A stretch of 64,000 bases of DNA, taken from contig CDRNVI010000079.1 of assembly GCA_977017575.1 (NCBI GenBank), forward strand, positions 43,746 to 107,745, read 5' to 3'. Under the pieces are notes generated by a model, which made no database searches, was not told the DNA's origin, and was given only the letters and a program-made list of their open reading frames with translations. A program made the position numbers and the translations under genes. Below, piece by piece: positions 4,028 to 57,935 of the stretch. The stretch's first letter is position 1. Each line of letters begins with the position of its first letter. The DNA comes from Paramoeba atlantica (lineage: Eukaryota; Protista; Discosea).

Positions 4028-4116
4028 ATATTATACATTACATACATTATTATACATAAATTAAACGGTGGTTATGGAGCCCACATAAGCCCACTGAGCG
4101 AATTGTGGCACGCTTA

Positions 4117-6852: not shown

Positions 6853-7074
6853 CTTTTCTACCTTATGCGTCGCAGAAAAGTAGCTGAGGGATCAACTGTG
6901 AGTGTCCGCTTTTCTACACTTTTTTCAGATACATGTTTTCGGACAAAAACAACCTAAATTCCGCAAAAAAATATTTTTTTAGGAAAAACAACACCTTTTC
7001 TTTACACTGATAATTTTCATTTCGATCTTTTCAATGATAAATGAAAAACGATTTTCACCTTGGGTCGTGAAAAT

Positions 7075-8158: not shown

Positions 8159-8776
8159 TCAATTACCTTTTTTGTTATCAAAACAACCATGCACAAGAAA
8201 TTCATTGCGTGGTACGTACGTCACCGCCTTATCCATGTACTGAGATAGCGACCATCGTAGCAAGCAATTTACGGTGCTGGACAAACGAATTTTCACATCT
8301 TCTTCGGTGTAATTCGTAAGTGGTCGTGTTCTGATATCAGCAACATTGTGCTGAGACAATATATCGGCCACAACCATTTTTACGTTCGCAGATATTAACA
8401 ATTTAACGATTTTTTCAATGACATAATCTACTGACGAAGACGCAGAATAGCCTTTTTCCATGCACCGACCTGCAACAGTATTATCTGAAGCTAGGAGTAT
8501 GAGCACAGGATGCTGATCTAGTGATCTTATGATACCCTCTTCTAGAGCCAACGCTTCCGCTACTTCGATTTCCGTTTATTGTTGTAGATTATATTCAAAT
8601 TTCTGCACAACGGCTGGTTCATTGATGTTAATTCTCCACGCTGCCACCCGGAAGGGTGTAGCATCTACTGCAAAACATACTGTTTTTGTAGTTAAAGCTG
8701 AAATATTGGGAATGTGAGAGCGCTTGTGTCTGAATTTTAATTCTATCTTACACAATAGACATTTGACAGCCCGCAA
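8159..8776 (-). pseudogene. RNase H remnant of a DIRS/VIPER-type retroelement
   Basis: AVDATPFRVAAW ... ILLASDNTVAG..KGYS ... HNVADIRTR resembles DIRS-type RNase H (D..E..DN..AD); split over two frames. Confidence 0.55.
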
Positions 8777-10999: not shown

Positions 11000-12140
11000 T
11001 TTTTTAGGCTCTTCGTTAAACGTGGTGATTGTTTTCAACTTAGAACTCACTCATGGTGCGCTCTTCCAGTTGAAAACTACCACCTCGTTTAACGAAGAAT
11101 CTAAAAAAGAAAAATCGCCAAAAGATCATGAATAATCCAGTTTTTTGGGTGAAAAACCTCGATTTTTCGACAAAAATTGCGAAATTTTAACCCGAATTTG
11201 GGCCGTTTTTGATGCTTTACCAGTAGGGGCAGGAGGCGAATCTGTCGAAAAAAACGTCGTAGCATGGTAGCTGAGGTACAAAACTCTTAAAAGACGTTTT
11301 AAGAGTCGATTTTGGAAAAATGGTATGTTTACTTTTTTTCGGGTCAAAAAAAAAAATTTGGTCACCCCAAAAATTTCGGAAATTTTCACCTTGTCGGACT
11401 CCTCCCGCGCGTACCAGGTGGGGGGGGTGGAAAGTCATCGCCGCGGCCTAATCTACCACTTCCCTGCGCTCGATTTCGAAAATCAACTCTACCCTCAATT
11501 ATTGAAAAAAGGTGAACAAAAACAGTGAAAATATAAAGAGGAACACAGTAATATAATAAAAAAATAAAAGGGGGCCCCGGTGGTCCAAAACTGAAAAAAT
11601 TCAAAAAATAGGGGGTCTAGGTGGGGTCCAGGGGGGGGGCATACGTCGCGAAATTTTTTTTCGAATTGTTTGCTTTTTAAAATCGAGCGCAGGGAAGTGG
11701 TAGAGTAGGCCGCGGCGATAATTTCCCACCCCCCCCCCTGGGGGTACCCCCCCTGGTACGCGCAGGAGGGGTCCGACAAGGTCAAAAATTCCGAAATTTT
11801 TGGGGTGACCAAAAAAAATTGTATTTCTCCAAAATCGACTCCTAAAACGCATTTTAAGAGTTTGGGCCCTCAGCTACCATGCTACGACGTTTTTTTCGAC
11901 AGATTCGCCTCCTGCCCCTACTAGTGAGGCATCCAAAACGGCCCAAATTCGGATTGAAATTTCGCATTTTTTGCCGAAAAATCCAGCTTTTTCACCCAAG
12001 AAAATAGATTATTCATGATCTTTTGGCGATTTTTCTTTTTTAGGCTCTTCGGTAAACGCGGTGGTAGTTTTCAACGCGAAATGCGCAGCATGAGGGACTT
12101 CTAAGTTGAAATCAATCACCGTGTTTAACGAAGAGCCTAA
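11000..12140. mobile_element. Two R1-related copies head-to-head, forming a ~1.15-kb foldback
   Basis: ~11000-11480 is the reverse complement of ~11680-12140; both outer ends carry the ~115-bp hairpin; the centre is the R1 start sequence. Confidence 0.8.
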
Positions 12141-23025: not shown

Positions 23026-25404
23026 ATGGAGGACGACAAATTCCCCACCTTCTTTTTCGGCGTCATGAGCGCCATCCTCCTCGTCACCGTGGCTCTCCCC
23101 CTCACCTGGGGCACCCTGTGCCATCTGAGCCACAAACTTGCCCCCTTCCTGCCCTCTCTTTTTGAAACCACAGAGCGCGACAAAAAGGTCTCTGGAACCC
23201 CCTGGAAACCGCAGCTTTCAAAAAAGAATGCCAGCGCCTCTTTCTCTCCCTCCTCTCGATCCCCCAGTGTGGATACACAAAAAAAGGTCGAGAAAACAAA
23301 TTTTTCGGAGTCTCCCAATCCAAATTCAACCTGTGAAAACGCAATTTCGCCATCTTTCCTATCTTCTCTACGTTCCCCATTCACTCCCTTTTACGGCAAT
23401 CTTCATTTTTGGCTCTCCCACCCCTCCCATCTCTACGCCCACTACCGCATCCTACGCACCCACCCCGCCCTTCTCCGTAAAATCGTATTCCCCCGCGTCT
23501 CCTCCTTTTGCTTTCGGCCCAAAGTGTTTCTCCTTTTCCTTTGGGTTCTCTCAGTGTATCTTTTCGCCACACAAATTCCGAAAGCGGCCTCGTTTGAGGT
23601 TTTGGGGCTTAACCCCGCGACGGCTTCCATCGGGGAAATTAAAAATGCCTACCGCAGTTTAAGTTTTCGGTACCACCCGGATAAGGACCCGAGCCCGGAG
23701 GCCCGGGAGCGGTATGGGAAAATACGAAAAGCGTTTAAACGACTCACCGGGGCGAAACTTGCGGAAGATGGCACCCCGGTGGAGGATACGGAGGAACCCC
23801 TCGGGGTAGGGTTCGCGCTCCCGTTCTTTTTGCGTGACCCCGAGCATGAGGGACGGACGCTGGTGATTTTGCTGCTGTGTGCGTTTGGGATTCCGGCGGT
23901 TTTGCTGTATTTCTTTTTTATTCGCGAGAAAACGACCTATGGGGTGGTTTATGAGCGGCTGAAACAAATGGTGACCCTCGCGCGCGGGTTGCATGGGGAA
24001 ATGGGGATGCCGGAGAATCCGAAGGTCGCGGCGACGAAGCTGCATCAGGAGAATATTCAGAAATTGTTAAAACAGGCCGGGTTGTGGCAAAGTGGGATGG
24101 TCCCGGAGGTGGTGCATAACCTCCCGGATCTCGCCCGGCTGCATAAGTTGTGTTCGCATGCGAAAAATGCAACGGGGCGGATGCAGCAGGATGCACTGTT
24201 TCGGCTGCAAAGTCTCGGGTTTGAAGATGACGCACTGCAGTCGTTGATACAAACGATATTAAGCGAGGAATGGGAGAAGCCGTGTGCGGCCGCAAAACCT
24301 CTGGAAAACATAGCCGCAGAGATCTCGCGAAATCCGCCAGATTATTTTCCCGTCTCAGAGGAACAGTTTGAGGCCGCAAATTACTTTTTAGGCTTCGTCA
24401 TGGAACTCATGCCACCCGTGGTGAAGCCGTTTGATTTACAAAACCGGTCTACGCGGTTGTTAAAGTTATATCGCGATAAAGAGTCATTGCTGCATAAATG
24501 TCACCAGTGGGCACAAAAAATGGAAAAAGATAAAAGGGAAAGAGAGAAGAATGAAAAGGGGGAGAAGGGTTGTGAAGAGGAGAGATCAATGCTGTCCCAG
24601 GAAGCAAAATCACGTGAAAACGAAAAAACGCAATCCGAGTTTTCGAGTAAAAGTTCTCTGGGTGTCGATCCGACACTTTCGAGTGACTCACTGGGTGCAA
24701 ATTCGTGTGATAAGCTGAAAGTGACCTCATCTTCCTATTTAGAGGTCAACTCCGAAACGCACCCCCAAACCGGGAAACTTTTCTCCCCGCGCGAAGGCTC
24801 CGCCCTCCAGGAATCAAATCCTTTACATTCCACAAGCCATACCTCTCTTTCTTCGGTCACCACATCTTCTTTACCTTCCGAACAAAACCGAATGTCCTCA
24901 AAAACCTCTTCTTCTCACACCTTCGACACAATCCGTCCCGCCGGCAGCCAAAGCGCTCCCTCCCCTGCCTTACGCCCTCCTCGACCCCATGCTGCCGAAA
25001 CTCATGAAAATCTTCATGAATCCAAAACATTACAAAACGAAAACTCTCCACCATGTCTTCCCCCTTTCGCAAATCCCAAAATCTCTTCTCATCCCTCCAA
25101 CCCCACCCTCTCCCCTCCTTTATCCCTTTCTCTTCACAAAACAATACAAAACGGTGAAAACAAAAAATCCAATTTGTTTTATGAAACCCAAGAAAGGGAA
25201 AGAAAGGAAATTACGGTTTCTAAATCCCTCAGTCCGCAGTGGGTGGAGAAACTCCTCGCCCTCGATGAGGAGATCATGACGATGCACAACGATATGAATC
25301 GCAGTGCGATTGAGTATCTCAGCAGCGGTCACCACCGACGGATGAAAAAGTTCCAGAAATACAAGGAGGCGGAGCGTAGGAAGCTCGCTCCAGGGGGGCG
25401 GTAG
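23026..25404 (+). CDS. SEC63: SEC63-like membrane J-domain protein
   Basis: Two N-terminal hydrophobic segments, J-domain (FEVLGL..EIKNAYRSLSFRYHPDK), GFALP motif, third TM segment; Ser-rich C-terminal half is divergent. Confidence 0.75.
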   Translation: MEDDKFPTFFFGVMSAILLVTVALPLTWGTLCHLSHKLAPFLPSLFETTERDKKVSGTPWKPQLSKKNASASFSPSSRSPSVDTQKKVEKTNFSESPNPNSTCENAISPSFLSSLRSPFTPFYGNLHFWLSHPSHLYAHYRILRTHPALLRKIVFPRVSSFCFRPKVFLLFLWVLSVYLFATQIPKAASFEVLGLNPATASIGEIKNAYRSLSFRYHPDKDPSPEARERYGKIRKAFKRLTGAKLAEDGTPVEDTEEPLGVGFALPFFLRDPEHEGRTLVILLLCAFGIPAVLLYFFFIREKTTYGVVYERLKQMVTLARGLHGEMGMPENPKVAATKLHQENIQKLLKQAGLWQSGMVPEVVHNLPDLARLHKLCSHAKNATGRMQQDALFRLQSLGFEDDALQSLIQTILSEEWEKPCAAAKPLENIAAEISRNPPDYFPVSEEQFEAANYFLGFVMELMPPVVKPFDLQNRSTRLLKLYRDKESLLHKCHQWAQKMEKDKREREKNEKGEKGCEEERSMLSQEAKSRENEKTQSEFSSKSSLGVDPTLSSDSLGANSCDKLKVTSSSYLEVNSETHPQTGKLFSPREGSALQESNPLHSTSHTSLSSVTTSSLPSEQNRMSSKTSSSHTFDTIRPAGSQSAPSPALRPPRPHAAETHENLHESKTLQNENSPPCLPPFANPKISSHPSNPTLSPPLSLSLHKTIQNGENKKSNLFYETQERERKEITVSKSLSPQWVEKLLALDEEIMTMHNDMNRSAIEYLSSGHHRRMKKFQKYKEAERRKLAPGGR

Positions 25405-25989
25405 GGGAAGAGAGGAGGGGTTTGTATTTTTGGTATTTTCTTGTAAAGTAAAAAGGTCTTTTTTATGGGTTTGTGTTTTTTTAAAGGGTAAAAAGTAAAA
25501 TCCACAATGTGAAAGTGTTGGTTGGTTGGTTTTTTTAGCAAACTGAAACTCATATTGCGGGTGGGTGGGTTTTTTTGATTTTGATTTTTCTATAGAAACT
25601 TGTATTCTACACCTACGATGGGTATGTGCTTTTGAGGAACACCATTTTGGAATTTTGATTTCTCTTGTGTAAACATTTCCGGAGTCTATCCGAACACGTT
25701 CTTAAATTCTACACATGGTGTTATTGCAGCTTAGTGTACGTAGCTGGTTTTGAGACGTAATTTTCGAACATATTTTTAGTTTAGTTTTTAACAGTAGTGG
25801 TTTAAAGCTCTGAAAATATTTCTCTCTATTTTTTTATGGAATATGATTGAATGCCTGATGACCTCATCGCACACTCGATATTGAAATTTCAATAGAAAAT
25901 TTTTTGAAAGAAGCGTGCACTTCTTACTGCTATTCCGCCCACTGAGAAATGTACATCGAAGGGAAACTAAAGTGAGATGCACTGCTTAA

Positions 25990-28146
25990 TTCCATGACCT
26001 CGGTCTCCCCAATGGAGGCAACGCCCTGTCTCAGCATTGCAAATACCAAGGCTTCGGGGGATACCGTTTATGAGGCTTCTTTGCGTCGCTCAGTCCCGTT
26101 CGCTGTCGAATTGAGCAAACTGTGCTACCTGTATACCCAGAATGCAAAAGGTCGTGGATTTCTGGTGGTTTGTACTTGTATTTAGTGGAGACCTCGCGAT
26201 TGGGAAGATCTTCTATCGCTTCCTGTGACACGGTAGCCTCCCTCGAGGCCCGCTAGACGTGGCTTGCATTGGTTCTCTCCAATGCAGCAGACTGTTGTAA
26301 CATGCCTCGTCGGCTACATCTCCCAGTTGTGTGGAACAACATCGGGCTGGGGAGTTGGTGACCGTGGAACGTTCCCCAGCCACTCTTTTCTTCACTCTAC
26401 TAGCATGGAGCGATTGGTGACTGGGAGTTTGACCGGCCGGTCACATAAGATCGGGCAACAGTTCAATAAATTGCTGCGCCGTTACGCTAAAATGTCAAAC
26501 AAAACCGCGGCATATTCAGTTGGATATTCAGTTGACAACTGCGGAGCCGTAAAGGAGACGCCCCACCACCGCCTAAGGTAGTGGATAACAGTAACTGCAT
26601 TTCTTGTTCCCACGTCGTCGTAAACTGTTTCGAGTTAGAGTATCACCTACCACGGCTTGAAACAAGCTGTCAGGGCATACGTATTCGAAGCCTTGTGGTA
26701 GTCCTCGAACAAAGCACAGGTTCGGAATACATCTGAGACAAAGGGGCATTCCATCGTCCCAATGGCTGCCACCGCCATATTCAAAGCAATCTGGCGGTTC
26801 CTCTTTTATTTTGTATTTTCTATTTTGGGGTTCTATCTTCTAGTTTTCTATCTTCTTTTGGGTCTTTATCGCCTCCAGAATTAGTAACAGGTCCTGCGAA
26901 GTTTCCGATACCGAGTGCATGTTCCGCAGGCGTTTGCCCCCGGCGTTTGTCGTCATGTGTAGCGTCGGGCAAGGGAAACACCTCGCTCTTTTCTGATACC
27001 ACTTCTTCTTTTGGCGCATAAGATGTCAGTCAAGGCGACTAGCACTGACTGCGTTACCTCACGACTGGAGCATTCCCCCATCGCTATGGGGAGATAGGAA
27101 GAATGGTGCCCAACCGGGGCCCCTGGTTTTGAGAACAATTTGAGGGACGCCCCGGTCAGGAGCTCCCTCATTGAAGGGGGGAGGGAATTCGTGGTAGTCC
27201 CCTGTATAATCCATGTCACAGCCCCGAGGATCCTCTTCCAAGAGTATCGGAAGCAGAAGCTCCTTGGTCCACCCAGTCGGACCTGGTGCTCGGAGGGAAG
27301 CGAGGCTTTCGGCCCTTCTGGCGACGTCCGCTGGGGATGGAAGGGGACCGTGCCGGGCCTTGTCATAGAGGTAAATCCCTGGTGTGTATGGACTCCCTGT
27401 CGGGTGGAGACATTTGTCCTGCTCAAGGGCAGCCGTCGGATTCGCCGGTGGGTCGAGGGGCTCCTCGAGAGTAGCCGCCGCCCTCGAGAAACAAGAGGCC
27501 CTACACAACTCCTCCACCCGTTTCTTAATGGAAGCCTCCGTGGCTATACTTTCTAAGATAGGGCCTGGATTTGCCTCTATGCATCCGCGCCGGAGATTAC
27601 ATCGGACCAGTTCGGTGAACCAGCCCGAGTTAGCGATCAACTGTTTGTTTGGAAGAAAGGTCCAGCAGGCCGATCCGTCGTCGGCGACGTATGGGCTCCA
27701 GGCTTTTGCGAATTCTTGGGTTATCCCGAACGAATGGCATAAAAAGAGGGGGATGTTCGCCTCCTCCACCGTGCCAGGCGTTTGAAGGCAGGCTCCGGTC
27801 CGGCTACCATCGTATATCATGATGTGGGGCCCGTACGAAGAGCCTACGTTGGGAACAGAGATAGAGGTCCATAGGCATTCTGCCGCTTCGAGATCGGCGT
27901 CGGACTCGAGGTATGGTTGCTAGGGATGCCCAGGGTGACACCTATAGCCTGTGTCAGCCCCTGAAGGCTACCCAGCCCCGGCCCGCAAACCTGGATCCTA
28001 CCTTCAGCTAGTGGACCTAGATGAAGATTCACTTTTGTCCAGTCCCCTGCGTGAGGAGGGGGGTTCTCGGCCATGCCCCCTCCTTCGCTCCGGGAATGAC
28101 ATTCCGACCAGCCCAGGAGTAAAAGCGAATGAAAAATATTCGACAA
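25990..28146 (-). pseudogene. Degenerate CRE/SLACS-like non-LTR retrotransposon (copy C)
   Basis: KKRVEELCRASCFSRAAATL..HP and RAPGPTGWTKELL match AKRAELLARQGEFSRAMAAL..HP and SAGTMGLRPEHL of copy A; downstream RT is decayed. Confidence 0.65.
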
Positions 28147-28442
28147 GTCTTAATTGAACCTATTCTCATATTACACCCGAGTGCACACAATTTTATATCA
28201 AAAAGCTCTCATTGATCAGTATCCGCATCAATCATTTCCTCACCAAAAGAAAGCTGCTGAAAATCGTTGGAGACGACTTCTGTCTCCAAAGCAGCTTCTG
28301 CAGGCGTTGCGCCAATAAGATTGCTGCCACGTAGAGATTGTATCCGTTGGGGGGAAATTGTTTCTGCGCCTCGTAGAAGGTGAGATGAGAGCTTGCGTTC
28401 AGTCTCACGATGCGTCGACGAACTGTACGTCAACACGGCTTA

Positions 28443-28622
28443 CCCAAGAGGCGTAAGCCGGGTAAGGGAACTGGTTCCCTGAGGGGAGGGTCCGGGACGG
28501 TCCTCCGAGTACTGGACCTAGTCGGTTCTCGGCCCAGCCTCTTATAGTGAGACCGTCAGGAATATTGCGATGAGCGGGTTTGAACTCGCCGTCTGAGCAC
28601 CATGTGCTTCAAACTTTGAATT
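28443..28622 (-). mobile_element. 180-bp structured insertion (SINE-like candidate)
   Basis: Splits the hAT C-terminus; CTTA on both flanks; several hairpins; A/B-box-like TGCTCAGACGG and GAGTTCAAACC on the minus strand. Confidence 0.45.
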
Positions 28623-30756
28623 CTTAAACCTCGTAAACACTGGGAAACTTATAATGACCGACTGTTTCCCACCACTTGAGCTCAGTAGTGTGACAAGAAG
28701 GATTCCATTCATAGTCACTGCAATTCAGGTAAGAGCTCCATTCATTCTCAGTGATATGAAATGTTGGATTGCCGCTGCGAAATAAATCATTCGCTCGATC
28801 CACGGATATCGGTAGAATGCCTGACTTTTTCGCCCGCAATGTTATAAAATCTGGGGCAAACCACATTATGTCCTCACAAAATTTCATGTTGTGCTTGTTG
28901 TTTAGACGCGAAAGATGGTGTTTCAATGCAACCTGGAGGGCTTCGCATCCAGCCTCCTCTTTGCTGATGCGAGTCAGCTTCTGAATCATAGGCCATACTG
29001 TTGTGGCTGTGGAAGTCCCGTCCAAGTCAGAGAATCGTTGCAATGCATCATGCAAGGGGGCTAGCCGGGAACAGAATTCACTTGCCGAAGACATAATGCT
29101 ACGAACAGAGCACGTGCTTATAAGTTCGGCACACTTCCTTACTGACTCACTGACACGTGGATTGCATAATTCTGTAACAGTAGGCATTTGTACTTTGAGA
29201 AACTCTATGCATGTAAATTTGTCGTGACACCATCGTGTCACTCCTCCAAGTTTCGGTACCGTAACTCCGGAAACTTCTTTTGCGTTACGAAGATCCTGGA
29301 CAACTTTAGGGCCCATGGAAAAAAGTACCTGAGCACACTTCTCAATGTCTCTTGGGAAGCTTGCAAGCTCTTCTATAATGGTTGGTGCGCTGTCTGGACA
29401 CAGTTTGTCTAAAACCCGCAATGACGCTAACAGATCATCTAGCAGTTCGATCCGGTCTCCCTCGTCCAACTTATTTGACTGAACAGCGCCATACCATTGA
29501 ACGAAATACTGCTCTGCGTCTCTCGTTTTGGCATCAAAGCCTCCAAGAAGTACATCTAAAGCAACTCCACGGTATCGTTCCTTCTTCGCAGTCACCTTTT
29601 CGGCACCGTAAAAACTTTGTCGAAAATACTTCTTGAAGTTAAACAGAGGCGTGTTTTCGTATTCTTTCATACTGTCGCGTGCAATGTTATTCAGAAAATG
29701 ACCAATGCACGAGAGCAGGGCAACAGATGGTAGCTTATTCAGTATCGCGTTATTGAAGTCTCCCCAATTGTTCTCTCCTATGGGACGAATGCGGTCGAAT
29801 ATGCGTTTCGTTTCTTCTTCGGCTTCATCCCGTGCAACGTGATTAACCGCGCATCCGTCCACCATCATATAACGCAGTTTGCCCAGCAAATGCACCCCTA
29901 TTATGGAACTCAGCGTCTCAACCAGAATTTCGGCTGATTCCTTCCCGTTGAAGGCTTTGCGTCTAGGATGATACATTGGGGGGAGAAGGTAATCACTCTG
30001 GGCGACATATAGAACACCCACCAAGACATGTTCGCTCAAAACTTTGTCGATTCCCGCGTCCACAGCAATCCCAAAAAAGGGCTCTTGTGTAATATCGTTT
30101 ACAATCTTATTCCATATTTCTTCCGCCATATCCTTTTCCCACTTTGCGCATCAACTTGTGGTTCTTAGTGAGCAGAGAAAGAACTTCACCCTGCGTTGCA
30201 CCTACAGAGCGTAATTCCTCGTACTCGTAAATAAGAGAGTGGGCGGCCTTGCACGAGAGGTTGGTCTGTGAAACCAGGCAAGGAATACACTTTTGCACAA
30301 ATGTTTGAACGGACCGAGTTGGATGATCCTCCCCTTCTTTTACGCCTTTATGAGCTTCATCACGAGGACAATCACACCCGGTGCACACGTGCTTGATGTG
30401 GTGGTAATAGTGGTTGTTATACGCCGAATGCCACTCGCACCTTTATAACGCATAAAACTCGCACCCTTATAACGCATAAAACTCGCACCCTTATAATGCA
30501 TAATGCACCCTGATAACGCATATTGTCCCACTGATAATGCATATTGTCCCACTGATAATGCATAAAAACTCGCACCCTTATAACGCATAAAACTCGCACC
30601 CTTATAATGCATATTTTTTGCGAGCCCCTCAAAAAAAAAGTGACCCCCCCTCGAAAAAAAAATCGACCCCATGAAAAAAAAGTGGAGGGGGGGAAATAAG
30701 TTAAAAAGAAAAAAAGTGGAGGGGAGAAACAAGTTAAAGAGCGCTAGTATTTCATT

Positions 30757-30932
30757 CCTGCTCCCGGTGAGGCCCCGGAGTTGCGAGAGGCCTCCATACC
30801 CCACAACTACCACCTTCCCCCCCTATTTAGCGGGGGTCGCGCGAGCGACCCCTGATAAATGGGGGGAAGGTGGTAGTTGTTTTGGGGAATATGAGAGGCC
30901 GAACGCACGGAGGGGCCGGCCGGGCCACTGAG
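30757..30932. repeat. ~175-bp GC-rich hairpin module (also at 39870-40045, 40160-40247, and reversed at 59497-59590 and 60170-60247)
   Basis: CAACTACCACCTTCCCCCC...GGGGGGAAGGTGGTAGTTG stem with distinct flanks, near-identical between copies. Confidence 0.85.
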
Positions 30933-31345
30933 TCTGACGTTAGTGGGAAGCAATTTGCGAAGCCCAACCTTTCCATCATGCCCAATCCCTAGAAAAGCCA
31001 AGACCTTGTTTACGCGTCTGCAAGACAAAAATGTGTGTCGTTAGTGGGAAGCAATTTGCGTAGCCCAATTTTTCCATCATACCCAATCCCTTACAAAGCC
31101 AAGACGACTGAAGCCCAACTTTTCTGACTGAGCCCAACTTTTCCACCATACCCAACCCGTAATAAAGCCAAGACCTTTTGAAGCCCATACACGTAAAGAA
31201 AACGACATTCAATGCAAGAACGCACACGAAATGCAAATATCCAATACAATCTCGTGAATACCAACAAGGCCGCGCAGTTTCATAGGAAATTAGTGTTTTA
31301 TGACACAATATTTGAAGGAAGAAGCCCACGCACACGAAAAGAGAT

Positions 31346-32338
31346 TTAAGATTCCTGCGAGCTGTCCAAGAGAATTTGAGGTCGAATTTTCCGTAAGTTT
31401 TCCACAAACTCAGATGGGGACTGGTCTTGAGGGAGCACCACTTTCGGTCGAGCATTGATATTGCTGGATACAGAATCAAGGTCTGCTTGGGATATATTAC
31501 TGAAAGGATGAGACTTTGGGTAGAAATCTCTGACGACGCCATTGAAATTTTCGACACCACCCTTTTCCCAGCTCGCGTACGGTTTACAAAAATACGACGA
31601 GCAATTAAGGGAACGATTTACGCTCTCGTGCTTCGCGAATTCCGTTCCATTATCATATGTGAGTGTCCGTACCAAAAAGCCTTGAAGGGCGCTGGTGATA
31701 GTCTCTGCTACAAGAGTCGATTTCTTGCATGATATCTTTTTCAGGATCCCGAAACGACTTTTGCGCTCAACCAGGGTAAGAAAGTATCCACTATGGCGTG
31801 TACCTTCTATTAGATCACACTCCCAATCACCGTATCGTTCCCGATCGTTAACAATGCTGGGCCGCATATCAATATCTGTACGATTAGGGATGCTGGTACG
31901 ATTAGTTCCACGACGACGGCGTTGTCCACGAATTCCCCCCCGACGGAGGCAACTCTCCAAGTTTTGACTCTTATTCCGACTAATAAAACCATAAATTGCC
32001 TTCCGGGAAATGCTCACACCTTCTTTACGCAAAGTAACAGATATCTGTTGAGGGCTAAAGCGCCGACGTAACAGAGATATGACACTCTCTTTGATGTCTC
32101 CTTCAATTTTGCTTGCACGGGACTTCCGTTTACTCATTGCTTGGTTGAGTGTTCGTTCAGCCCGCTTCGCGTTGTACACACCATCCCGATCTCCACGTGC
32201 CAGTTCTCGACTAAGAGACGACTGATTGACTTTCAATTTTGAGGCAATTTGTGCTTGCGAAAAGTTTTCTTGATTGTGGAGAACCTCAATAAGTTTACGA
32301 TCTTCTGAATTAATACGTTTTCTAGATGTTTGACACAT
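31346..32338 (-). CDS. IS30-family DDE transposase, intact (330 aa)
   Basis: N-terminal HTH (FSQAQIASKLKVNQSSLSRELARG), IDMRPSIVNDRERYGDWECDLIEG, TLTYDNGTEF, FCKPYASWEKGGVENFNG (DD33E). Confidence 0.93.
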   Translation of the reverse strand: MCQTSRKRINSEDRKLIEVLHNQENFSQAQIASKLKVNQSSLSRELARGDRDGVYNAKRAERTLNQAMSKRKSRASKIEGDIKESVISLLRRRFSPQQISVTLRKEGVSISRKAIYGFISRNKSQNLESCLRRGGIRGQRRRRGTNRTSIPNRTDIDMRPSIVNDRERYGDWECDLIEGTRHSGYFLTLVERKSRFGILKKISCKKSTLVAETITSALQGFLVRTLTYDNGTEFAKHESVNRSLNCSSYFCKPYASWEKGGVENFNGVVRDFYPKSHPFSNISQADLDSVSSNINARPKVVLPQDQSPSEFVENLRKIRPQILLDSSQES

Positions 32339-33465
32339 GGTGCAAGAAAGACAAAAAAAATATTATCCGGTTACATTATGCATTATCAGGTTACATTATG
32401 CGTTATCCGGTTACATTATGCGTTATCAGGTTACATTATGCGTTATCGGATTACATTATGCATTATAAGGGTGCGAGTTACTATGCATTATAAGGGTGCA
32501 AGTTTTATGCGTTATCAAGGGTACAATATGCATTATCAGTGGCCCTATATGCATTATCAAGGGTACAATATGCAGTTACTATGCATTATAAGGGTGCAAG
32601 TTTTATGCGTTATCAAGGGTACAATATGCATTATCAGTGGCCCTATATGCATTATCAAGGGTACAATATGCGTTATCAAGGGTACAATATGCGTCATCAG
32701 GTTACATTATGCATTATAAGGGTGCGAGTTTTATGCGTGATAAGGGTGCGTGTGCCAATGGCCCACCCACGGACATTCGATGCACTTTAAATGAGTCCGT
32801 TGACCCATGGAGTTAACGTGGTGGGGACGGGGATGACGTGACTCATACTCTCGGCAATCTTTGTTCCGCAGCTCTTCGTCCTTAGTCTTACCTGCTGGGG
32901 CATCCTTCCCAAAACAACGTTCACGTGCACGTTATCCGAGGATACTGCATAGGGTCACACTCCTTCTTTTGTGTGCGTAAATTTTCCCCTGCCTGGGAAG
33001 GAGCCGCCTCCCGTGCCTGATGCAGATCAGATTTGAGCCTTCGCCTCTGCGCTACAGGAACGTATTTATATTAGTCTCGTTTACTAGAGAGTATCATTCG
33101 GGTTCGCAGGAGCAGGGCTTGCAGAAATAACCCTCACACTTTGCAGTGAAGGAGGCGGAGAGGAAGGACGCTTGACTCGAACATTGGGAGGTAGTGTCGG
33201 CAATTTCCGGGAAGAACGTAACGGAGCCTCCGAAAGGGAAGATGTTTCAGGGGGGGGGGGTGCTTCTTTCGGGGGAAGGTTGCTTCTTCGGCCGCATAGA
33301 GAAAAATGGAGTTGTGAAAGTGAGGTAACTGTAGTATACTTAAATTTAGAAAGATAATTTCAAGCGAAATCCTAATCACTCGATCAAAAAATTAATGACT
33401 GCTATCTAGTTAAAAAAATTCTAAGTCTCTGCGTAGAACGCGTAGAATTCTACGTAGACTACCAA

Positions 33466-33577
33466 CTATGTATAAAGGTGAATTATGCAATATAAAGGTG
33501 AATTATGCAATATAAAGGTGCAGCTTAGTATGCAATATAAGTGGCCACTTTTTATGCCAGATAAAGGTGCAAGTGGG
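33466..33577 (+). repeat. Orphan terminus of an IS30-family element (20-bp repeat array plus terminal motif)
   Basis: TATGCAATATAAAGGTGAAT repeats ending ATAAAGGTGCAAGTGG; nearly identical to 59830-59939. Confidence 0.7.
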
Positions 33578-33850: not shown

Positions 33851-34184
33851 AGAGGTCGTTTCGATGAGTACTTTTTTTCGGAAAACTAAACATGCGTTTC
33901 GATGTGCACTCATCCAAACTACTACAACCCCGGAATTTGAAATCGCATCACGTGGCAGAGCGCAATGAAAGCAGAAATCGACGTGAATACCAGTTATGGG
34001 GCGAATGATCTTACTACTGCGCTGAAAAAAAATCTCTCGTCTGTTTTTGGGAACTTTTCTTCATCACCTGTTTTGATGACTCGTGCGAACTATCATTCTG
34101 CCAGAATTTTCGCCGTAGCCAGAAAGCACAAAAATCGTGTCAAATCATCTTCAGGATTCGTCCTCGCGGCCACGCCTGGCGAGA

Positions 34185-34224
<40 letters not shown>

Positions 34225-34537
34225 ACACTGTGGGCGTGGGTTCAAACCCCACTCTCGTCATTTTCCGAAAGATTGTCCTCCTCACCTCGCAAAGATGAAA
34301 TGCGTAGGGAGAGGCATGAGAAGCATTCATGCAGGGCAAAGCGTGAAAGTGTCGGTCGTTACGCGCATGGCCCTAAATTGGGCGATGTGGCAAGTTGGGC
34401 GATGTAAGTTTGGGCGATGTAAGTTGGGCGATGTAGTTTGAATGAGTACTCCAAATTCCAAAGGAAATTTTCAATCCAGAGGATTTTAATCCAAAGGAAC
34501 TTTTAGTTTTCTGTATGTACTCATCGAAACTACCTCT
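33851..34537. repeat. 21-bp inverted repeat pair enclosing tRNA-Leu
   Basis: AGAGGTCGTTTCGATGAGTAC ... GTACTCATCGAAACTACCTCT (1 mismatch); the core matches the TIR of the Merlin element at 47807-50377. Confidence 0.7.
34178..34260 (+). tRNA. trnL: tRNA-Leu (UAG)
   Basis: GGCGAGA/TCTCGTC acceptor stem, TGGCCGAGTGG A-box, CCAGA-TTTAGGC-TCTGG anticodon arm, long variable arm, GGTTCAAACC, T-run after. Confidence 0.95.
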
Positions 34538-35751
34538 GCCTATGGTTTCAAGTTTCAAGTTTTATCCAGCGCGTGCCCCTTGCGAACTTCGCATTGCTGC
34601 TTTGAATGTGTTTAATCATGCACTTATCCTGCAGAGATTTTGCCTCACAGAGTCCTTACCCGCACACGACGGGTGGATCACGTGAGGATTTGCCCTCGCT
34701 GGAGGAGAATGGGTGCGAGAGCTGGGGTCCCAGGTTGCAGAGTTCTGTTGTCTTGTGCAGGTGCAGAGAGCCGGATGCGTAATCCCCGTATTACAGTTTC
34801 GGGGGTAATCCGGGTGCAGAGAGCTGGGACAGAGCCGAGGTGGGGAGATTTGGGTGAGAGCCTAAACGCGGGAAGCGAGGAACACGTCTAGTGGTCCTCA
34901 AGGGAAGTTACCGTGACGCCTAGCTCTCCCGGAGAGGTAAGGATTGAGAGGAAAGAAGCCGAGAGAGGAAGCACTCACTCCAGGGGAGTGAGTCGGGGAG
35001 GGGTGAAGGGATAAAGGCGCGTCCCCTCCTTCAGCGAGGGACAGTTTCTGACAAGCTTGTCAACAACACCTCGACGGTAACAGTTCAGGAAAAACGGCAG
35101 CGCACTGAACTCACTATATTCGAGAAACGAGAAATTTGTAGATTTCAAAGTTCTATAAAACAAATCGGCTTGGGGACAACGAAAATCCAGAAGTTCGTTG
35201 AGAACTCAACGAAGTGCCCGAATTTCGTTGAGTACCCAACGAACGGGATTTGGATCTGCTTTGAAACTACGGAATGGGGAGAAGAAAAGGATAAGGGCTG
35301 GATCCCAGAACCTGGGATCTGCAAGACCGTAGCGGAAGGAGGAAATCGTCCATCTGAATCCAAGATTGCCTCAAAAAAGTCATTCCGGGTACGTCCCGGG
35401 TTCGTTGTGTCCTCAACGAGTGTTTTGTTGAATACACAATCCTGCGGAAGTGGCAGACATAGGTTCTCAGTGCGCGACCCGCGCGCTGGAGCGCGTGGGT
35501 CGCCAAAAAATATCATTCTGTCCCAGGGCTACGCTCACAGTTGGGCCTTGCTCGCGAGACCACCTGAGATCATGTGAGACCTCTCCAGAGTGGATTTGGC
35601 TCGGGAGGGTTGTTGGATGACCTCAGAACGAGGTCACGCGAGATCGTACTCGCAACCCCTCAATAGTTGGGGGCTGATTTTGAGGAGCTACGGGTGAAAT
35701 CTCGCCACCCGCAGTCCAGCCTGGTTCAGCTAAACCAAAGAAGTGCAAAAA

Positions 35752-35825
35752 TGCTCCCGGCAGGGATCGAACCTGCGACCTTGGGCTTATTAGACCCACG
35801 CTCTAACCATCTGAGCTACGAGAGC
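35752..35825 (-). tRNA. trnI: tRNA-Ile (AAU)
   Basis: Full cloverleaf on the minus strand; anticodon loop CTAATAA. Confidence 0.95.
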
Positions 35826-35908
35826 ACACGTCGTGTTCGGTGATCTTCTAGGACAACTGAGATTAATGTCATGGATTGCATATCTGTCCGCTCGACGCGT
35901 AGCGTAGC

Positions 35909-35980
35909 GGTCGCGTGGCTCAATGGTAGAGCGTCTGACTACGGATCAGGCGGTTGCAGGTTCGATCCCTGTCGCGATCA
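35909..35980 (+). tRNA. trnR: tRNA-Arg (ACG)
   Basis: Full cloverleaf; loop CTACGGA; TTTT terminator. Confidence 0.95.
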
Positions 35981-36004
35981 TTTTGTCGACGTGAGTTCGA
36001 CAAA

Positions 36005-36076
36005 AGGACGCACCCGGGTTTGAACCAGGGACCTCTCGATCTGCAGTCGAATGCTCTACCACTGAGCTATGCGTCC
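36005..36076 (-). tRNA. trnC: tRNA-Cys (GCA)
   Basis: Full cloverleaf on the minus strand; loop CTGCAGA. Confidence 0.95.
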
Positions 36077-36168
36077 ACGCGCCCAGCACCTGAGGAACTT
36101 CTATTTTGACGCACACGGATTTTTTACCTAGCGGCGCACAGCTTGGATGCCGTACCTCGCGTGCGGTC

Positions 36169-36319
36169 ATACCTTCTCGGCCGTAAGGCTAAGATCAAGT
36201 GTAATTTCTGTTCTTGTCAGCTTAGTATCTGATATCAGCCTCCGGGCTGAAGATCTAGCTAATCTCCTGCGGCGGTCAGGTTCCCGATTTGCATTGCTCG
36301 GGAGCTTGGCCGCTGCTCT
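36169..36319 (+). ncRNA. U2: U2 snRNA, short kinetoplastid-like form (~150 nt)
   Basis: ATACCTTCTCGGCC-GTAA-GGCTAAGATCAAGTGTA..CTGTTCTT, stems IIa and IIb, long terminal stem with a TTGCA loop; no stem-loop III; 3' end approximate. Confidence 0.92.
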
Positions 36320-38314: not shown

Positions 38315-38596
38315 GTATTAAATGTATGTTCAAATATATACGTATTCGATGTTTGATCAGAGGTAGGGGGGGGGGGTATAATAAGGACCCTAGGGACACT
38401 TATTGCGGTGGTTGTAAAACTACCGCTCTACACTCGATTATTGAAAGAAAAGTGAACAAAAACAGTGAAAATATAAAGGGGAACACAGTAATATAATAGA
38501 AGAAAAAAATATAAAAGGGGGCTCCGGTGGTCCAAAACTGAAAAAAAAAATTGAAAAAAATGGGGGTCCAGGGGGGCCCACTCGCACATTGATAAT

Positions 38597-39524
38597 TTTC
38601 TTTTTTAGGCTCTTCGTTAAACGCGGTGGTTGCTTTCAACTTAGAAGTCACTCATGCTGCGCGCTTCGCGTTGAAAACTACCGCCGCGTTTAACGAAGAG
38701 CCTAAAAAAGAAAATTTAGCCTGGAAAACGGAAAGATTATAGCCAAAAATAGCCGAATTTCGGGTACAAATGGGGTCATTTTCGCATATTTTTGCTCTCA
38801 GAGCACTAAATCCGACATTTGCGCGTGGGAAATCACTCGCAGGCATGAATGAAAGCCTACCGAACGTATTGGGTAGAGAATACGACTCCAACCATACCAT
38901 TCTTTCGACACAAAAATGCCCCTTTAGGTCCGAAAAATACTTTTTCACCTTTTTTAGTCAAAAGTGGGTCATTTTGGGGGGCGCACCACAGTTCGAAGAA
39001 GTGATACCTTGCGAAAACAACTGCGTAGAAATCTAGTGTAGGTCCCAAACTATCAAAATACAATAGGGGAAACGATTTTGGAAAAATATTTTTTTTGTCA
39101 TCTTTTCCGCCAAGTTGAATTTTTTTTCGAAAAAATTTTTCCGAAAAAATCCGAACTTGGCGGACCCGTCCTGCGGATACGCGGGGGGGTCACCCCCGGG
39201 TAGGGGGGTGGAAAATGCGCGCCAAGACCCCGGCTACCCTTTCTGCGGTTTTTTTTCGAAAACTAATTTTTTCGAAAAAATTTGATCGACCATGCCCCCC
39301 CCCCCTGGACCCCCCCCCTGGACCCCCCCCTGGACCCCCCCCATGGACCCCCCCCATGGACCCCCCATTTTTTTCAAAAAAATTTTTCAGTTTTGGACCA
39401 CCGGAGCCCCCTTTTATATTTTTTTCTTCTATTATATTACTGTGTTCCTCTTTATATTTTCACTGTTTTTGTTCACTTTTTTTTCAATAATCGAGTGTAG
39501 AGCGGTAGTTTTACAACCACCGCA
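38597..39524 (-). mobile_element. R1 copy in reverse orientation inside a minisatellite unit
   Basis: Removal restores GCACATTGATAATGCAT; AT on both flanks. Confidence 0.8.
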
Positions 39525-39825
39525 ATGCATAGTTACTGCACATTGATAATGCATAACGTGCCGCACATTGATAATGCATATAGCACATTGATATTGATAT
39601 TGCATAGTTACTGCACATTGATAATGCATAACATGCCGCACATTGATAATGCATATAGCACATTGATAGTGCATACTAAGCGGCACATTGATATTGCATA
39701 GTTACTGCACATTGATAATGCATATAGCACATTGATAATGCATATAGCACATTGATATTGCATACAGCACATTGATAATGCATACAGCACATTGATAATG
39801 CATACAGCACATTGACGATGCATTA
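39525..39825. repeat. ~20-bp minisatellite GCACATTGATAATGCATATA (IS30-family subterminal array)
   Basis: About 14 degenerate units, preceded at 38578 by CCACTCGCAC and followed by the hairpin module, the same order as in the intact IS30 element. Confidence 0.8.
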
Positions 39826-42271
39826 TTTGGAAATTAAAGGTGTTTTCAAGAAATAGTGAACACTCGTCTCTGCTCCCGGTGAGGCCCCGGAGTTGCGAGA
39901 GGCCTCCATACCCCACAACTACCACCTTCCCCCCCTATTTAGCGGGGGTCGCGCGAGCGACCCCTGATAAATGGGGGGAAGGTGGTAGTTGTTTTGGGGA
40001 AAATGAGAGGCTGAACGCACGGAGGGGCCGGCCGGGCCACTGAGTCACGTGAAAGTGTGACACCCAAAAACTAAACCTAGGTCTTGTTTACCCGTCTGCA
40101 CAACAGAACCGTAAATGGCACGTAAAGATGGTTGGCCGAGGTACCCAATAAATTCACCTTTGCTCCCGGTGAGGCCCCGGAGTTGCGTGAAGGCCTCCAT
40201 ACCCCACAACTACCACCTTCCCCCCCTAATTTAGCGGGGGTCGCGCGAGTCCAGGGGGGGGTCCAGGGGGGGGTCCAGGGGGGGGGGATGGTCGATCAAA
40301 TTTTTTCGAAAAAATTAGTTTTCGAAAAAAACCGCAGAAAGGGTAGCCGGGGTCTTGGCGCGCATTTTCCACCCCCCTACCCGGGGGTGACCCCCCCGCG
40401 TATCCGCAGGGCGGGTCCGCCAAGTTCGGATTTTTTCGGAAAAAAATTTTTGAAAAAAATTTCAACTTGGCGAAAAAAATAACAAAAAAAATATTTTTCC
40501 AAAATCGTTTCCCCTATTGTATCTTGATAGTTTTGGGATCTACACTAGCTTTCTACGCAGTTGTTTTCGCAAGGTATCACTTCTTCGAACTGTGGTGCGC
40601 CCCCCCAAAATGACCCATTTTTGACTAAAAAAGGTGAAAAAGTATTTTTCGGACCTAAAGGGGCATTTTTATGTCGAAAGAATGGTATGGTTGGAGTCGT
40701 ATTCTCTACCCAATACGTTCGGTAGGCTTCCATTCATGCCTACGAGTGATTTCCCACGCGCAAATGTCGGATTTAGTGCTCTGAGAGCAAAAATATGCGA
40801 AAATGACCCCATTTGTACCCGAAATTCGGCTATTTTTGGCTATAATCTTTCCGTTTTCCAGGCTAAATTTTCTTTTTTAGGCTCTTCGTTAAACGCGGCG
40901 GTAGTTTTCAACGCGAAGCGCGCAGCATGAGTGACTTCTAAGTTGAAAGCAACCACCGCGTTTAACGAAGAGCCTAAAAAAGAAAATTTTTATACCTAGG
41001 AGGTACAATAGGTGTCCCTAGGTATAATAACCCGGACTGTGGTTTAGTACTATATAGTAACTATATTCAATGAAAAAAACTATATTTTACTATATTGAGG
41101 GAGATACGGAGTACCTCGCTTACTAAGGTTAATTCCAAAACTTGAAAATGCCCCTCAAAGAAGCGAGAGATCGAGTTTTTTCAAAATTTTAAAACGTAGC
41201 AGTAGCTCATTAGATGAACTCTTTAATGCTCGAAAAATCATCTACAACGACCTCATTTCTCAAATTGTAGAACACTTTTGGTAAAAAAAAGTGCGTCTGC
41301 AAAGGTCTGCGATACGACAAACTGGTTGACTAAGGAGAGTCCTTTGAGAGGGTTGAAACATCCCCAGCCGCACCCACCCGCACCCAGTGCATCTTCAACG
41401 GCAAAGACTTAGCGAAATTTGGGAGATCCAGAAGGAACCCCGAAGGTTCGGGGTAATACTCCCCGAGAGGGATGACTTTTTTTTCAGTCAATTTGTACGT
41501 GTGCTTCACCATACGCGTTTTTTTGCAGAATGCAACCCAAAAGAAAGTGCGAACTGTGCAAACTAAAAACCTTTCACAAAATGAATACATGTATATCCCT
41601 TATATCCTTACATTGACATATAAAATTTAAGAAAATAATTTGGCGTTGTCCTTTTTTTCCCGCGCAAGATCCTTCTTTCTCTGCTTTGACTTCATTTGCT
41701 TCAAAGCGCTCTCCTCAGCTCGCTTCTGACGCATCTCTGCCTGCGTCAACTTTCTGTACGTCTTACTTCCTTTGCGTCCGTGAGCAGGGCTTTTTCCAAT
41801 TTTTGTGACACCAGTGCGCTGTAAATTTTGTTTTACCTCTTCTCGGTACTCTCGTATAGCATCTTTATCTTTTTTGTCACCTTTCTGAAAATGACAAGAG
41901 CAAAAGTCTCGAGAAGCCCATTCTCTAACGACGGAATGCGTGGAATCCAAAGATTCTACGGAGTCGTCGTACAGTGTTACCTGGTGAACTTTCCAGTGCG
42001 TACACTCTGCATTCCAGAGCAACCCGAAAGCAGATCTTGCAAAATCTTTCCGATGCTGATTATAGTGCGGCAACTTGTGCTGATCCATATGGGCAAAAAA
42101 CCTTTCTACACGGTTTCTTATCCGGCGAAACTCCATATCAAATGTTTCGTCAATTGCAGGACCAACTTCTTGGCAAAAGCAATGACGGTTATCGATATAT
42201 GCCTTGTCTGCTATTATCATTACGGGTAGGGGGGACCTTCGATGAGTACTCATCGAAAGTCTACAACTTTC

Positions 42272-57886: not shown

Positions 57887-57935
57887 GTTTCTGCGAACCC
57901 TGGTTAAAACGCTTGTTTGGGTTACCCCCGAGGCC

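Follow-up and report, generated by a model that had tools for sequence, protein, structure and literature searches.

An IS30-family transposon lineage with multi-site arms, probably resident in the nuclear genome of a kinetoplastid-like protist

We found that a 2,327-bp element at positions 30430 to 32756 of a 64,000-nucleotide stretch of protist DNA (the window, to which all coordinates given without a locus name refer) very probably belongs, as a full-length copy, to an IS30-family lineage of DDE transposons resident in the nuclear genome of a kinetoplastid-like protist of the Euglenozoa. The element is a complete copy of the autonomous type, assigned to subfamily A, with its transposase gene on the minus strand and a 3-bp target-site duplication, AAT, immediately to its left (30427 to 30429) and right (32757 to 32759). 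To our knowledge, the IS30 family has so far been reported only from bacteria and archaea, and in the literature that we searched, including that on kinetoplastids, diplonemids, and euglenozoans, we found no eukaryotic IS30 lineage, in agreement with a preliminary description of this DNA that knew of no established one.

The intact 330-amino-acid open reading frame (ORF) of the element (31346 to 32338, minus strand, about 43% of the element) encodes a protein that scored 245.7 bits against the NCBIfam IS30 transposase model NF033563, for which the cutoff is 80, while its scores on the models of sister families (64.2 bits for IS481, 35.9 for IS21, and 30.4 for IS3) were all under the cutoffs of those models. 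Pfam domains were found at residues 5 to 49 (HTH_38), 57 to 116 (HTH_32), and 169 to 255 (rve), and the DDE triad consists of D175, D229, and E263, which are spaced by 53 and 33 residues and conserved in 84 to 87 of 89 aligned IS30 proteins. Judged by its sequence, the protein is an IS30-family transposase with an intact catalytic triad, as the preliminary description had read it from its HTH and DD33E features, and it is predicted to be active. The C terminus carries a short tail, RPQILLDSSQES, and a tail of this type (RPxxLLDSSQES) was found in frame in four protist copies, out of frame in one, and in none of 80 bacterial proteins.

Both ends of the element are arrays of short repeats. The 3' arm (30430 to 30613, plus strand) begins with the terminal 7 nucleotides GCCACTC and contains six exact copies of an 18-bp site, GCAC-N9-GCATA, together with variant units at a period of 24, and the 5' arm (32362 to 32756, minus strand) contains about 18 units of 20 to 25 bp, with five exact 18-bp sites, and ends in the terminal inverted repeat, ...GGGTGCGTGTGCC. 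This repeat pairs 30429 to 30479 with 32707 to 32757 over 51 nucleotides at 90% complementarity, the terminal 25 nucleotides of the element being GCCACTCGCACCTTTATAACGCATA at one end and GGCACACGCACCCTTATCACGCATA at the other, and the whole arrays are inverted copies of one another over 108 nucleotides at 89%. Tandem Repeats Finder identified array periods of 20, 21, 24, and 25 bp at 30433 to 30613 and 32362 to 32723. These measurements agree with the earlier picture of a 2.3-kb element with imperfect terminal inverted repeats and minisatellite ends, except that the units range from 20 to 25 bp and not from 20 to 22 bp.

The same end design, a 7-nucleotide tip (SSCRCNC) followed by the 18-bp site, recurs in the window and at other loci. 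The 18-bp site occurs 31 times in the window, compared to 0.96 expected, with 29 of these occurrences within IS30-derived arms and GCAC always tipward. The 17-nucleotide terminus SSCRCNCGCACNTTNAT occurs seven times (at 30430, 32756, 33577, 38577, 57957, 58115, and 59940), compared to 0.13 expected by chance; recurrence of this motif had been noticed beforehand at the third to sixth of these positions, which are given here exactly. The short motif GTGCGNGTGG at 21276 and 41374 was dropped as chance, since neither match fits the 17-nucleotide terminus. Loci L001, L003, L004, and L007 have the same arm design, with 9 to 22 of the 18-bp sites each. Across the protist copies, the arms hold 2 to 20 copies of the site at a spacing of approximately 20 to 25 bp, and its middle 9 nucleotides differ among subfamilies, of which at least five have site cores of their own. 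In bacterial sister loci, of which 115 kb were searched, the 18-bp site did not occur. Locus L002 also has none; the inverted repeats there are unrelated, and no duplication is readable. The L001 contig stops before the 3' arm, and no duplication is readable there.

Between the 3' arm and the gene lie, in order, repeats of an A run followed by a G/C block (30614 to 30757, with a similar stretch in the second copy of the window at about 59690 to 59750), an internal hairpin module, conserved and about 175 bp long (30758 to 30934, minus strand), and a spacer 3' of the ORF with subfamily-specific short tandem repeats (30935 to 31345, minus strand). Folded as single-stranded DNA, the hairpin has an energy of -62.6 kcal/mol and a z-score of -8.45, and it is 97 to 99% identical to 39870 to 40046, 60174 to 60248, and L007:2788-2957. 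In the reads, sharp alternative flanks are seen at both hairpin borders, and word depth is very high. An Rfam search of the element gave no family match, and we rejected the hairpin as a known RNA family because the only matches, to miRNAs and scaRNAs and located on the hairpin, were all below threshold. Upstream of the gene, a pyrimidine-rich leader (32339 to 32361, minus strand) extends from the last array unit to the ATG. Each of the six copies examined has a pyrimidine tract ahead of its ATG; an AG acceptor is present between tract and ATG only in some of them, so a role of the leader in trans-splicing of the transposase mRNA is proposed only tentatively.

The element interrupts a decayed gene on the minus strand, whose upstream part (32757 to 32932) ends in ...MGQRTHLKCIECPWVGH and whose downstream part (28624 to 30429) contains the second half of a BED-like zinc finger and a 501-amino-acid core ORF, with a 1-nucleotide frameshift at 30143 and without the C-terminal dimerisation region. 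When the element and one AAT are taken out, the translation reads ...KCIECPWVGH|SAYNNHYYHHIKHVC... in frame, the zinc finger is restored, and the flanks, once rejoined, give a gap-free alignment with an uninterrupted paralog, P0305. The window copy and the paralogs P0305 and P0306 gave no Pfam match; a homolog from strain PhF-6 (P0307, a EukProt transcript with 36% identity over 99% of the query) matched PF05699 with 24.9 bits against a cutoff of 21.4, and a CxxC...H...H finger is conserved. It is therefore through homology to this one domain-bearing protein that we tentatively classify the interrupted gene as hAT-like.

A 414-bp contig from public run X1 joins 30426 directly to 32757 and thus skips 2,330 bp, exactly the element plus one AAT, and a second X1 contig crosses the left junction of the filled site with zero differences; the runs were examined as contigs, and of the filled junctions only the left has its own run contig. 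The ambiguity of the read joint would also allow a 4-bp duplication, AATG; we rejected this length, since the two ends would no longer mirror each other and since 3 bp is the only fit for the other three copies with a duplication. With a precise empty site and an uninterrupted paralog in hand, we could uphold the earlier claims that an AAT duplication flanks an insertion into the zinc finger, with in-frame rejoining, and that the element transposed in this genome.

These data also bear on the possibility that the family was mobile long ago, with the present copy being either an inert relic or domesticated as a gene, which we consider unlikely. Many copies are broken (the second copy in the window, L003, L005, P0016, and P0060), and since 6 of 414 bases differ between the empty-site contig and the window, that contig may stem not from an allele but from a hAT paralog, in which case the insertion is dated only as later than the hAT duplication. 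However, this copy retains an intact ORF and catalytic triad along with two undamaged arms and an undamaged duplication, and the interrupted and empty flanks are 98.5% identical, which on such a scale makes the insertion young. Over the ORF, word depth is 98 to 110, compared to 18 to 30 in unique flanks, and the contigs are at least 99% identical; this is compatible with a few near-identical copies, although depth measures copy number poorly. The terminal repeats and multiple copies speak against domestication.

The closest relatives of the element outside the assembly are all bacterial, and the culture probably holds bacteria, as would be expected if an assembler had joined the IS30 of a culture bacterium to protist DNA. 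In contrast, two assembly contigs, the window and L006, which carries the same insertion, run through the element into flanking DNA on either side, and the left junction is also found in the independent run contig. A U2 snRNA and four tRNAs lie in the window at 1.4 to 3.5 kb from the element, the U2 snRNA within 3.5 kb, and other copies are located between eukaryotic genes; the L003 copy is flanked by kinesin/PIG-P and HSP90-family genes, and the HSP90-family neighbor is a eukaryote-type chaperone according to a PDB search. In addition, the flanks of the element rejoin a eukaryotic gene in frame, and bacterial representatives of 185,579 species reach at most about 45% full-length identity to the protist copies, which are 55 to 77% identical to each other. 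The contamination reading is already refuted for practical purposes, and we assign it next to no probability, in line with the preliminary description, which had argued that the element was native. A single assembly (ENA ERZ24900291) is the source of all protist copies, and a single study produced the four runs, so independent replication is thin.

In phylogenies with 80 and with 55 bacterial IS30 proteins, the nine protist copies formed one clade with 100/100 support, which was joined with 99/94 support to an IS30 group dominated by Verrucomicrobiota. Protist and bacterial sister transposases are 41 to 46% identical over their full length, and the protist subfamilies share 52 to 77% amino acid identity. 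By comparison of the coding sequences, we could show that the gene evolves under purifying selection, with a dN/dS of 0.066 in the only pair for which it was measurable; dS was saturated for all others, and this saturation of synonymous sites between subfamilies supports an old acquisition. An old acquisition that later diversified, as had been proposed, agrees with both the single clade and the saturated dS. The high divergence of the subfamilies, their saturated dS, and their differing array units might instead reflect several independent transfers, each subfamily descending from a different bacterial IS30. We regard this as very improbable: two data sets both place the copies in a single clade at 100/100, so it does not hold that each is nearest to a different bacterial IS30, and all subfamilies share GCAC-N9-GCATA arms, the RPxxLLDSSQES tail, and one hairpin module that keeps its position and orientation, all of them absent from the bacteria sampled.

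Elements of the IS30 family have terminal inverted repeats of about 20 to 30 bp, generate 2- to 3-bp duplications, and are approximately 1.0 to 1.25 kb long, nearly all of it ORF. The window element matches this family in its model score, its HTH and DD(33)E organization, its terminal inverted repeats, and its 3-bp duplication, and departs from it in compactness, with protist elements of 2.1 to 2.5 kb (2,327 bp in the window, 2,090 bp at L003, about 2,171 bp at L007, and about 2,527 bp at L004) compared to 1,214 bp for the bacterial sister IS, of which three copies (L021, L023, and L024) are present in an uncultured Verrucomicrobiae genome bin. The protist and Verrucomicrobiota-type elements have in common the order HTH, HTH, DD(33)E, a terminal inverted repeat of about 25 bp starting with G/C, and 3-bp duplications, which are CTG, ATA, and GTT in the bacterial copies and AAT (window), GGG (L004), GGT (L003), and GTT (L007) in four protist copies. 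Three paralogous empty sites for the L004 insertion (GGG) are found within the window. At L003, a longer palindrome on both sides, CGTTTAAGCGCAC, was rejected as the element end and belongs to the target; by the 11-nucleotide terminus rule, this element spans L003:3715-5804 with GGT on each side. Multi-site arms, the 175-bp hairpin, the pyrimidine-rich leader, and the C-terminal tail are found only in the protist lineage when it is compared to the bacterial relatives sampled. IS30 transposition proceeds through joined IR-IR junctions, in circles or tandem dimers; we saw no back-joining joint in the run contigs, which cannot reveal rare intermediates.

Several transposase-binding sites per arm are known from phage Mu, Tn7, the IR/DR repeats of Sleeping Beauty, and the subterminal repeats of En/Spm. 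The protist arms likewise contain repeated, oriented sites related to the terminal repeat, but the transposases are unrelated, and an arm of the elements described here can reach about 20 sites, arrayed regularly at about two helical turns and with a subfamily-specific site core. Repeat-rich ends that evolved after acquisition, as the preliminary description suggested, fit the absence of such arms from the bacterial sisters; calling them eukaryote style overstates the case, because multi-site arms also occur in the bacterial Mu and Tn7. IS481EU has been treated as a eukaryotic superfamily comprising several families, with terminal inverted repeats, duplications, and its own transposase clade, and further "ISxEU" groups are expected, with IS30 absent from the prokaryote-eukaryote links given there (PMC10045372). 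By the practice used for IS481EU, the protist elements form at least five subfamilies in one clade at 100/100, with prokaryotic IS30 models as the nearest. Like IS481EU and IS3EU, they represent a eukaryotic lineage of a prokaryotic IS family, with narrow hosts, a clade of its own, and the duplication habits of the parent; unlike IS481EU (4, 15, or 25 bp) and IS3EU (6 bp), they have a 3-bp duplication and IS30 as the parent family.

Only very rarely does a transposon transferred from a prokaryote to a eukaryote establish a mobile family there. When all major IS groups were surveyed in 430 eukaryote genomes, the sequences detected were solely IS607-derived, which the authors attributed to incompatibility at the level of transcription (PMC3673617). 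The lineage most likely started with one transfer from a bacterium with a compact IS of about 1.2 kb, of a subgroup now mostly represented by aquatic Verrucomicrobiota, followed by diversification into several subfamilies and by gain of the multi-site arms, the leader, the 175-bp hairpin 3' of the gene, and the short C-terminal tail. We somewhat favor an account in which a bacterial IS30 entered a kinetoplastid-like protist where, given polycistronic transcription units and trans-splicing, the incoming gene could do without its own promoter, and in which the arms, hairpin, and C-terminal peptide then evolved and adapted the enzyme to chromatin or nuclear partners. The gene would be expressed through host polycistronic transcription; the N-terminal HTH domains would bind the repeated 18-bp sites and so load several transposase molecules per arm, the DDE core would cut 7 nucleotides outside the outermost site and insert with a 3-bp stagger as in bacterial IS30, and the subfamily-specific sites would stop cross-mobilisation between subfamilies.

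Comparison of an established IS30 lineage with its compact bacterial sister separates what was kept (the enzyme core, the 25-bp terminal repeat, and the 3-bp stagger) from the parts added in the protist (multi-site arms, hairpin, leader, and C-terminal tail). It thereby makes testable what a bacterial transposase needs for working in a nucleus and whether kinetoplastid-like protists, through their polycistronic transcription, admit bacterial mobile DNA unusually readily. Since the 330-amino-acid enzyme is intact and its 18-bp site and 3-bp target are defined, it might also be worth trying as a genetic tool in such protists.

The window contains further copies and fragments of the family. A second, diverged copy, of subfamily C (58136 to 59940, plus strand), is 5' truncated, with its frame broken at 58239, a 239-amino-acid ORF at 58262 to 58981, a hairpin half at 59494 to 59578, and a 3' arm at 59756 to 59940; its order of parts and C-terminal extension (LLVDSSSES) are those noted in the preliminary description, and its bounds lie one base further out. 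The proposed non-autonomous derivatives were supported in part. Two of the recurring termini, of B type (CCCACTCGCACATTGATAA), belong to one 159-bp palindromic unit (57957 to 58115) that has a perfect inverted repeat of 19 bp or more around it and is without a target duplication, as its flanks, ACC and GGT, are reverse complements and not a direct repeat. The others are a solo end of about 110 bp, derived from a subfamily C arm and lacking a partner (33466 to 33577, minus strand), and a lone B-type terminus (38577 to 38593, plus strand) joined to the same short palindromic module as that at 57957. A subfamily B fragment (39524 to 40046, minus strand), which has eleven GCACATTGATAATGCATA-type sites and a complete hairpin module but is without a terminus, is 93% identical to an autonomous B-type copy at L007:2788-3190.

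The complete element occupies 30430-32756 (2,327 bp), with its transposase encoded on the minus strand, and the trinucleotide AAT lies immediately outside both ends. Its terminal inverted repeat pairs 30429-30479 with 32707-32757 (51 nt, 90% complementary), and the subterminal arrays, to which Tandem Repeats Finder assigned periods of 20, 21, 24, and 25 bp across 30433-30613 and 32362-32723, mirror each other as wholes (108 nt, 89%). Along the direction of the transposase, the parts run from a 5' arm through a pyrimidine-rich leader, the ORF, subfamily-specific tandem repeats, a hairpin of ~175 bp, and repeats of an A-run and a G/C block to the 3' arm. The leader, 20 to 45 nt long, precedes the ATG in 6 of 6 copies examined.

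The transposase ORF (31346-32338, minus strand) encodes 330 residues and scores 245.7 bits with NF033563, the NCBIfam model for IS30 transposases, whose curated cutoff is 80; the IS481, IS21, and IS3 models scored far under their own cutoffs. Pfam identified HTH_38, HTH_32, and rve core domains. The catalytic residues D175, D229, and E263 are kept in 84 to 87 of 89 aligned sequences, 80 of which are bacterial-type IS30 proteins. With these domains and a catalytic spacing of 53 and 33 residues, the preliminary description of an intact HTH and DD33E enzyme is correct. We also found a C-terminal tail, RPxxL[LV]DSSQES, in the main element, in two further protist IS30 proteins (P0001 and P0003), in the second copy in the window, and, out of frame, in a copy at locus L003 of the same assembly, while it occurs in 0 of the 80 bacterial relatives. 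Synonymous sites are saturated between subfamilies, and the sole measurable subfamily pair gave a dN of 0.144, a dS of 2.19, and a dN/dS of 0.066. On these sequence comparisons, purifying selection has preserved the transposase gene during a long diversification.

The strongest evidence for transposition comes from public sequencing runs of the same organism. In one of these (X1, examined as contigs), a 414-bp contig with a word depth of 22 joins 30426 straight to 32757 and so skips 2,330 bp, the element plus 3 bp, with four ambiguous letters (AATG) at the joint. The filled left junction is spanned by a second contig of this run (30315-30457, depth 18) with zero differences. In the empty-site contig, 6 of the 414 positions disagree with the window; its source is thus the other allele or a hAT copy close to the interrupted one. 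The same insertion is also present in ctg3881l (L006), which is 99.66% identical to the window across 6.7 kb and then diverges structurally; the filled form therefore occurs twice in the assembly, in a second haplotype contig or a duplicate. On either the allele or the paralog reading of the empty site, the insertion occurred within this lineage, later than the divergence of the hAT copies.

When the 2,327-bp element and one AAT are removed, two minus-strand frames join as ...MGQRTHLKCIECPWVGH|SAYNNHYYHHIKHVCTGC..., and downstream of the insertion lies a hAT-like core ORF of 501 aa (28624-30129, minus strand). The assembly also encodes an 864-aa paralog of this ORF (P0305, 57% identity), and the hAT dimerisation domain PF05699 is present in a homolog from the strain PhF-6 transcriptome in EukProt (P0307, 36% identity). 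The rejoined peptide aligns with P0305 without gaps across the junction (CPWVGHSAYNNHYYHH versus CPWWSHSLHNNHYYHH), and therefore the flanks belong together, with nothing missing or added.

The hAT copy itself carries a 1-nt insertion at 30143 (within 30107-30160) relative to a run contig with a depth of about 30. Without this extra base, the zinc-finger and 501-aa ORFs fuse (…NHKLMRKWEKDMAEEIW…), matching P0305 (…NHRVMRDWEKDLANEIW…), and the interrupted copy stops ahead of the C-terminal dimerisation region. The copy has decayed, or there is possibly an assembly error in the TTT run at 30143. Just past the hAT gene, ctg3881l (L006:6689-6993) passes directly from position 28666 of the window to 25642 (region 25352-28666), which implies a 3-kb insertion or deletion in either that contig or the window's.

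Close homologs of the transposase (55 to 96% identity) all come from one ENA assembly, ERZ24900291, and the setting of the IS30 copies is nuclear and eukaryotic. A U2 snRNA gene and four tRNA genes lie within 3.5 kb of the main element, the tRNA genes at 34178-34260, 35752-35825, 35909-35980, and 36005-36076 and the U2 gene adjoining them at 36169-36318 (cluster 34178-36318), and one IS30 copy is flanked by kinesin/PIG-P and HSP90-family genes. The ends could be read in three further copies. The L003 copy (3715-5804) has GGT on either side and the L007 copy (about 1026-3196) has GTT. G-runs border the L004 copy (about 3809-6336), and comparison with three paralogous targets in the window that lack an insertion (TA-G6-T) leaves GGG, with SS-CAC termini, as the one duplication that fits. 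The 3-bp duplication claimed for the main element is borne out by four independent insertions (AAT, GGG, GGT, and GTT), and the copies with readable ends share the terminus SSCRCNCGCAC. One of these four targets, that in L003, is at the edge of a palindrome with a 13-bp stem (CGTTTAAGCGCAC ... GTGCGCTTAAACG; L003:3680-3714 and 5805-5822). Bacterial IS30 elements prefer palindromic hot spots.

All subfamilies have in common an 18-bp site, GCAC-N9-GCATA, which occurs 31 times in the window against 0.96 expected by chance; 29 of the 31 lie within IS30-derived arms, always with GCAC toward the nearest tip. The terminal inverted repeat is the outermost such site with 7 nt ahead of it. At other loci of the assembly we counted 20 (L001), 19 (L003), 9 (L004), and 22 (L007) sites. 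The middle 9 nt vary by subfamily, being CCTTATAAY in the main element, ATTGATAAT in the B type, and CTTTATMTK in the second copy; the L004 site has the core CCTTATCTG with TCATA, and that of L003 has an 8-nt core, ATTCACAT. The array of each subfamily matches that subfamily's own terminus, and in L003 the outermost site at either end is unlike the internal array sites. Transposase-binding sites would be predicted to show such covariation of array and terminus, and we infer binding on this ground.

Maximum-likelihood analysis of 9 protist copies together with 80 bacterial-type IS30 proteins placed the protist sequences in a single clade (100/100), as had been anticipated for an old horizontal acquisition that then diversified. 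A second tree, built against 55 proteins that were translated from named genomes of prokaryotes, again gave this clade (100/100), on a long stem of 0.86 changes per site. There it joins (99/94) a subgroup of 18 sequences, 13 of them from Verrucomicrobiota, including Akkermansiaceae, Puniceicoccaceae, Opitutales, and Coraliomargaritaceae. Representative genomes of 185,579 prokaryotic species contained no full-length relatives above ~45% identity. A sister-group IS of 1,214 bp, of which one Verrucomicrobiae genome bin carries three copies, resembles the protist copies in its terminal repeat of ~25 bp and its 3-bp duplications (CTG, ATA, and GTT) but has no arrays. By this comparison, the protist lineage inherited its enzyme core, terminal-repeat length, and 3-bp stagger and gained the arrays, hairpin, leader, and tail within the protist.

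Both the initial observation and its interpretation stand, and the element represents, in a new eukaryotic form, a transposon family known from prokaryotes. The 2023 IS481EU paper links prokaryotic and eukaryotic groups for IS630, IS1380, IS1595/IS1016, ISAzo13, IS256, IS5/ISL2, IS3, and IS481, a list from which IS30 is absent, and predicts more "ISxEU" groups (PMC10045372). A screen of 430 eukaryote genomes by Gilbert and Cordaux, covering all major IS groups, recovered derivatives of IS607 alone (PMC3673617), and the Ginger paper mentions IS30 solely as a bacterial relative of integrases. In the literature searched, we found no eukaryotic or nuclear IS30 lineage, whether under the name "IS30EU" or in the kinetoplastid, diplonemid, or euglenozoan reports listed. 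The pattern already seen in IS481EU and IS3EU fits the present case, which is of real interest for transposon biologists. New here are the direct empty site in reads, a 3-bp duplication in four copies that matches the bacterial sister group, the 18-bp site across all subfamilies, and the Verrucomicrobiota-type sister group itself.

As DNA, the hairpin of ~175 bp folds at -62.6 kcal/mol (z-score, -8.45) and is 97 to 99% identical across subfamilies, compared to only about 60% for their transposases. It matched no Rfam family. The module is found in the window at 30758-30934, 39870-40046, 40161-40249, 59494-59578, and 60174-60248 and elsewhere at L003:5365-5530 and L007:2788-2957. In reads, its word depth is 4,000 to 11,000, versus about 20 to 30 for unique flanks (hundreds-fold), and sharp alternative flanks appear at both borders. 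Possible explanations of the hairpin are a separate unit present in high copy, a cassette for recombination, or a functional part under strong constraint. Just beyond the second copy's end, about nine 21-bp units (TATGCAATATTCCTATACTTA) at 59975-60170 adjoin a half hairpin; this array is possibly the arm of a further IS30 subfamily with a diverged site core.

The second copy (about 58136-59940) is real, having the order of parts and the C-terminal motif of the main element, as had been reported; its 5' arm and roughly the first 88 codons are missing, and a break in the frame lies at 58239. The recurrence of the terminal motif likewise holds, far above chance. Its sites had been read as non-autonomous derivatives, and they are derivatives or fragments, none of them shown to be mobile and non-autonomous. 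They comprise a solo end of the copy-2 subfamily (33466-33577), a lone B-type terminus (38577), and a palindromic unit of 159 bp bounded by B-type termini on both sides, with no target duplication (57957-58115). The same holds for a B-subfamily 3' arm and hairpin at 39524-40046, whose autonomous partner lies in L007.

A palindrome of ~200 bp (57934-58135), in which an outer inverted repeat, perfect over at least 19 bp (CAACATGCAGACACCCACC), encloses two B-type termini and a 125-bp palindromic module, directly abuts the truncated 5' side of the second copy and may have arisen by a fold-back or strand-switch event. At 38577-41000, arms of ~720 bp (38597-39315 and 40268-40985), each ending in this 125-bp palindromic module (TTTTCTTTTTTAGGCTCTTCGTTAAACGCGG...), form a large inverted-repeat structure around C-rich and G-rich runs and the B-type IS30 fragment. 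This structure probably represents a separate transposon family into which IS30 elements often insert, with the L004 copy in one such target, and the same ~720-bp arm also occurs in L005 and at window positions 3348-3925.
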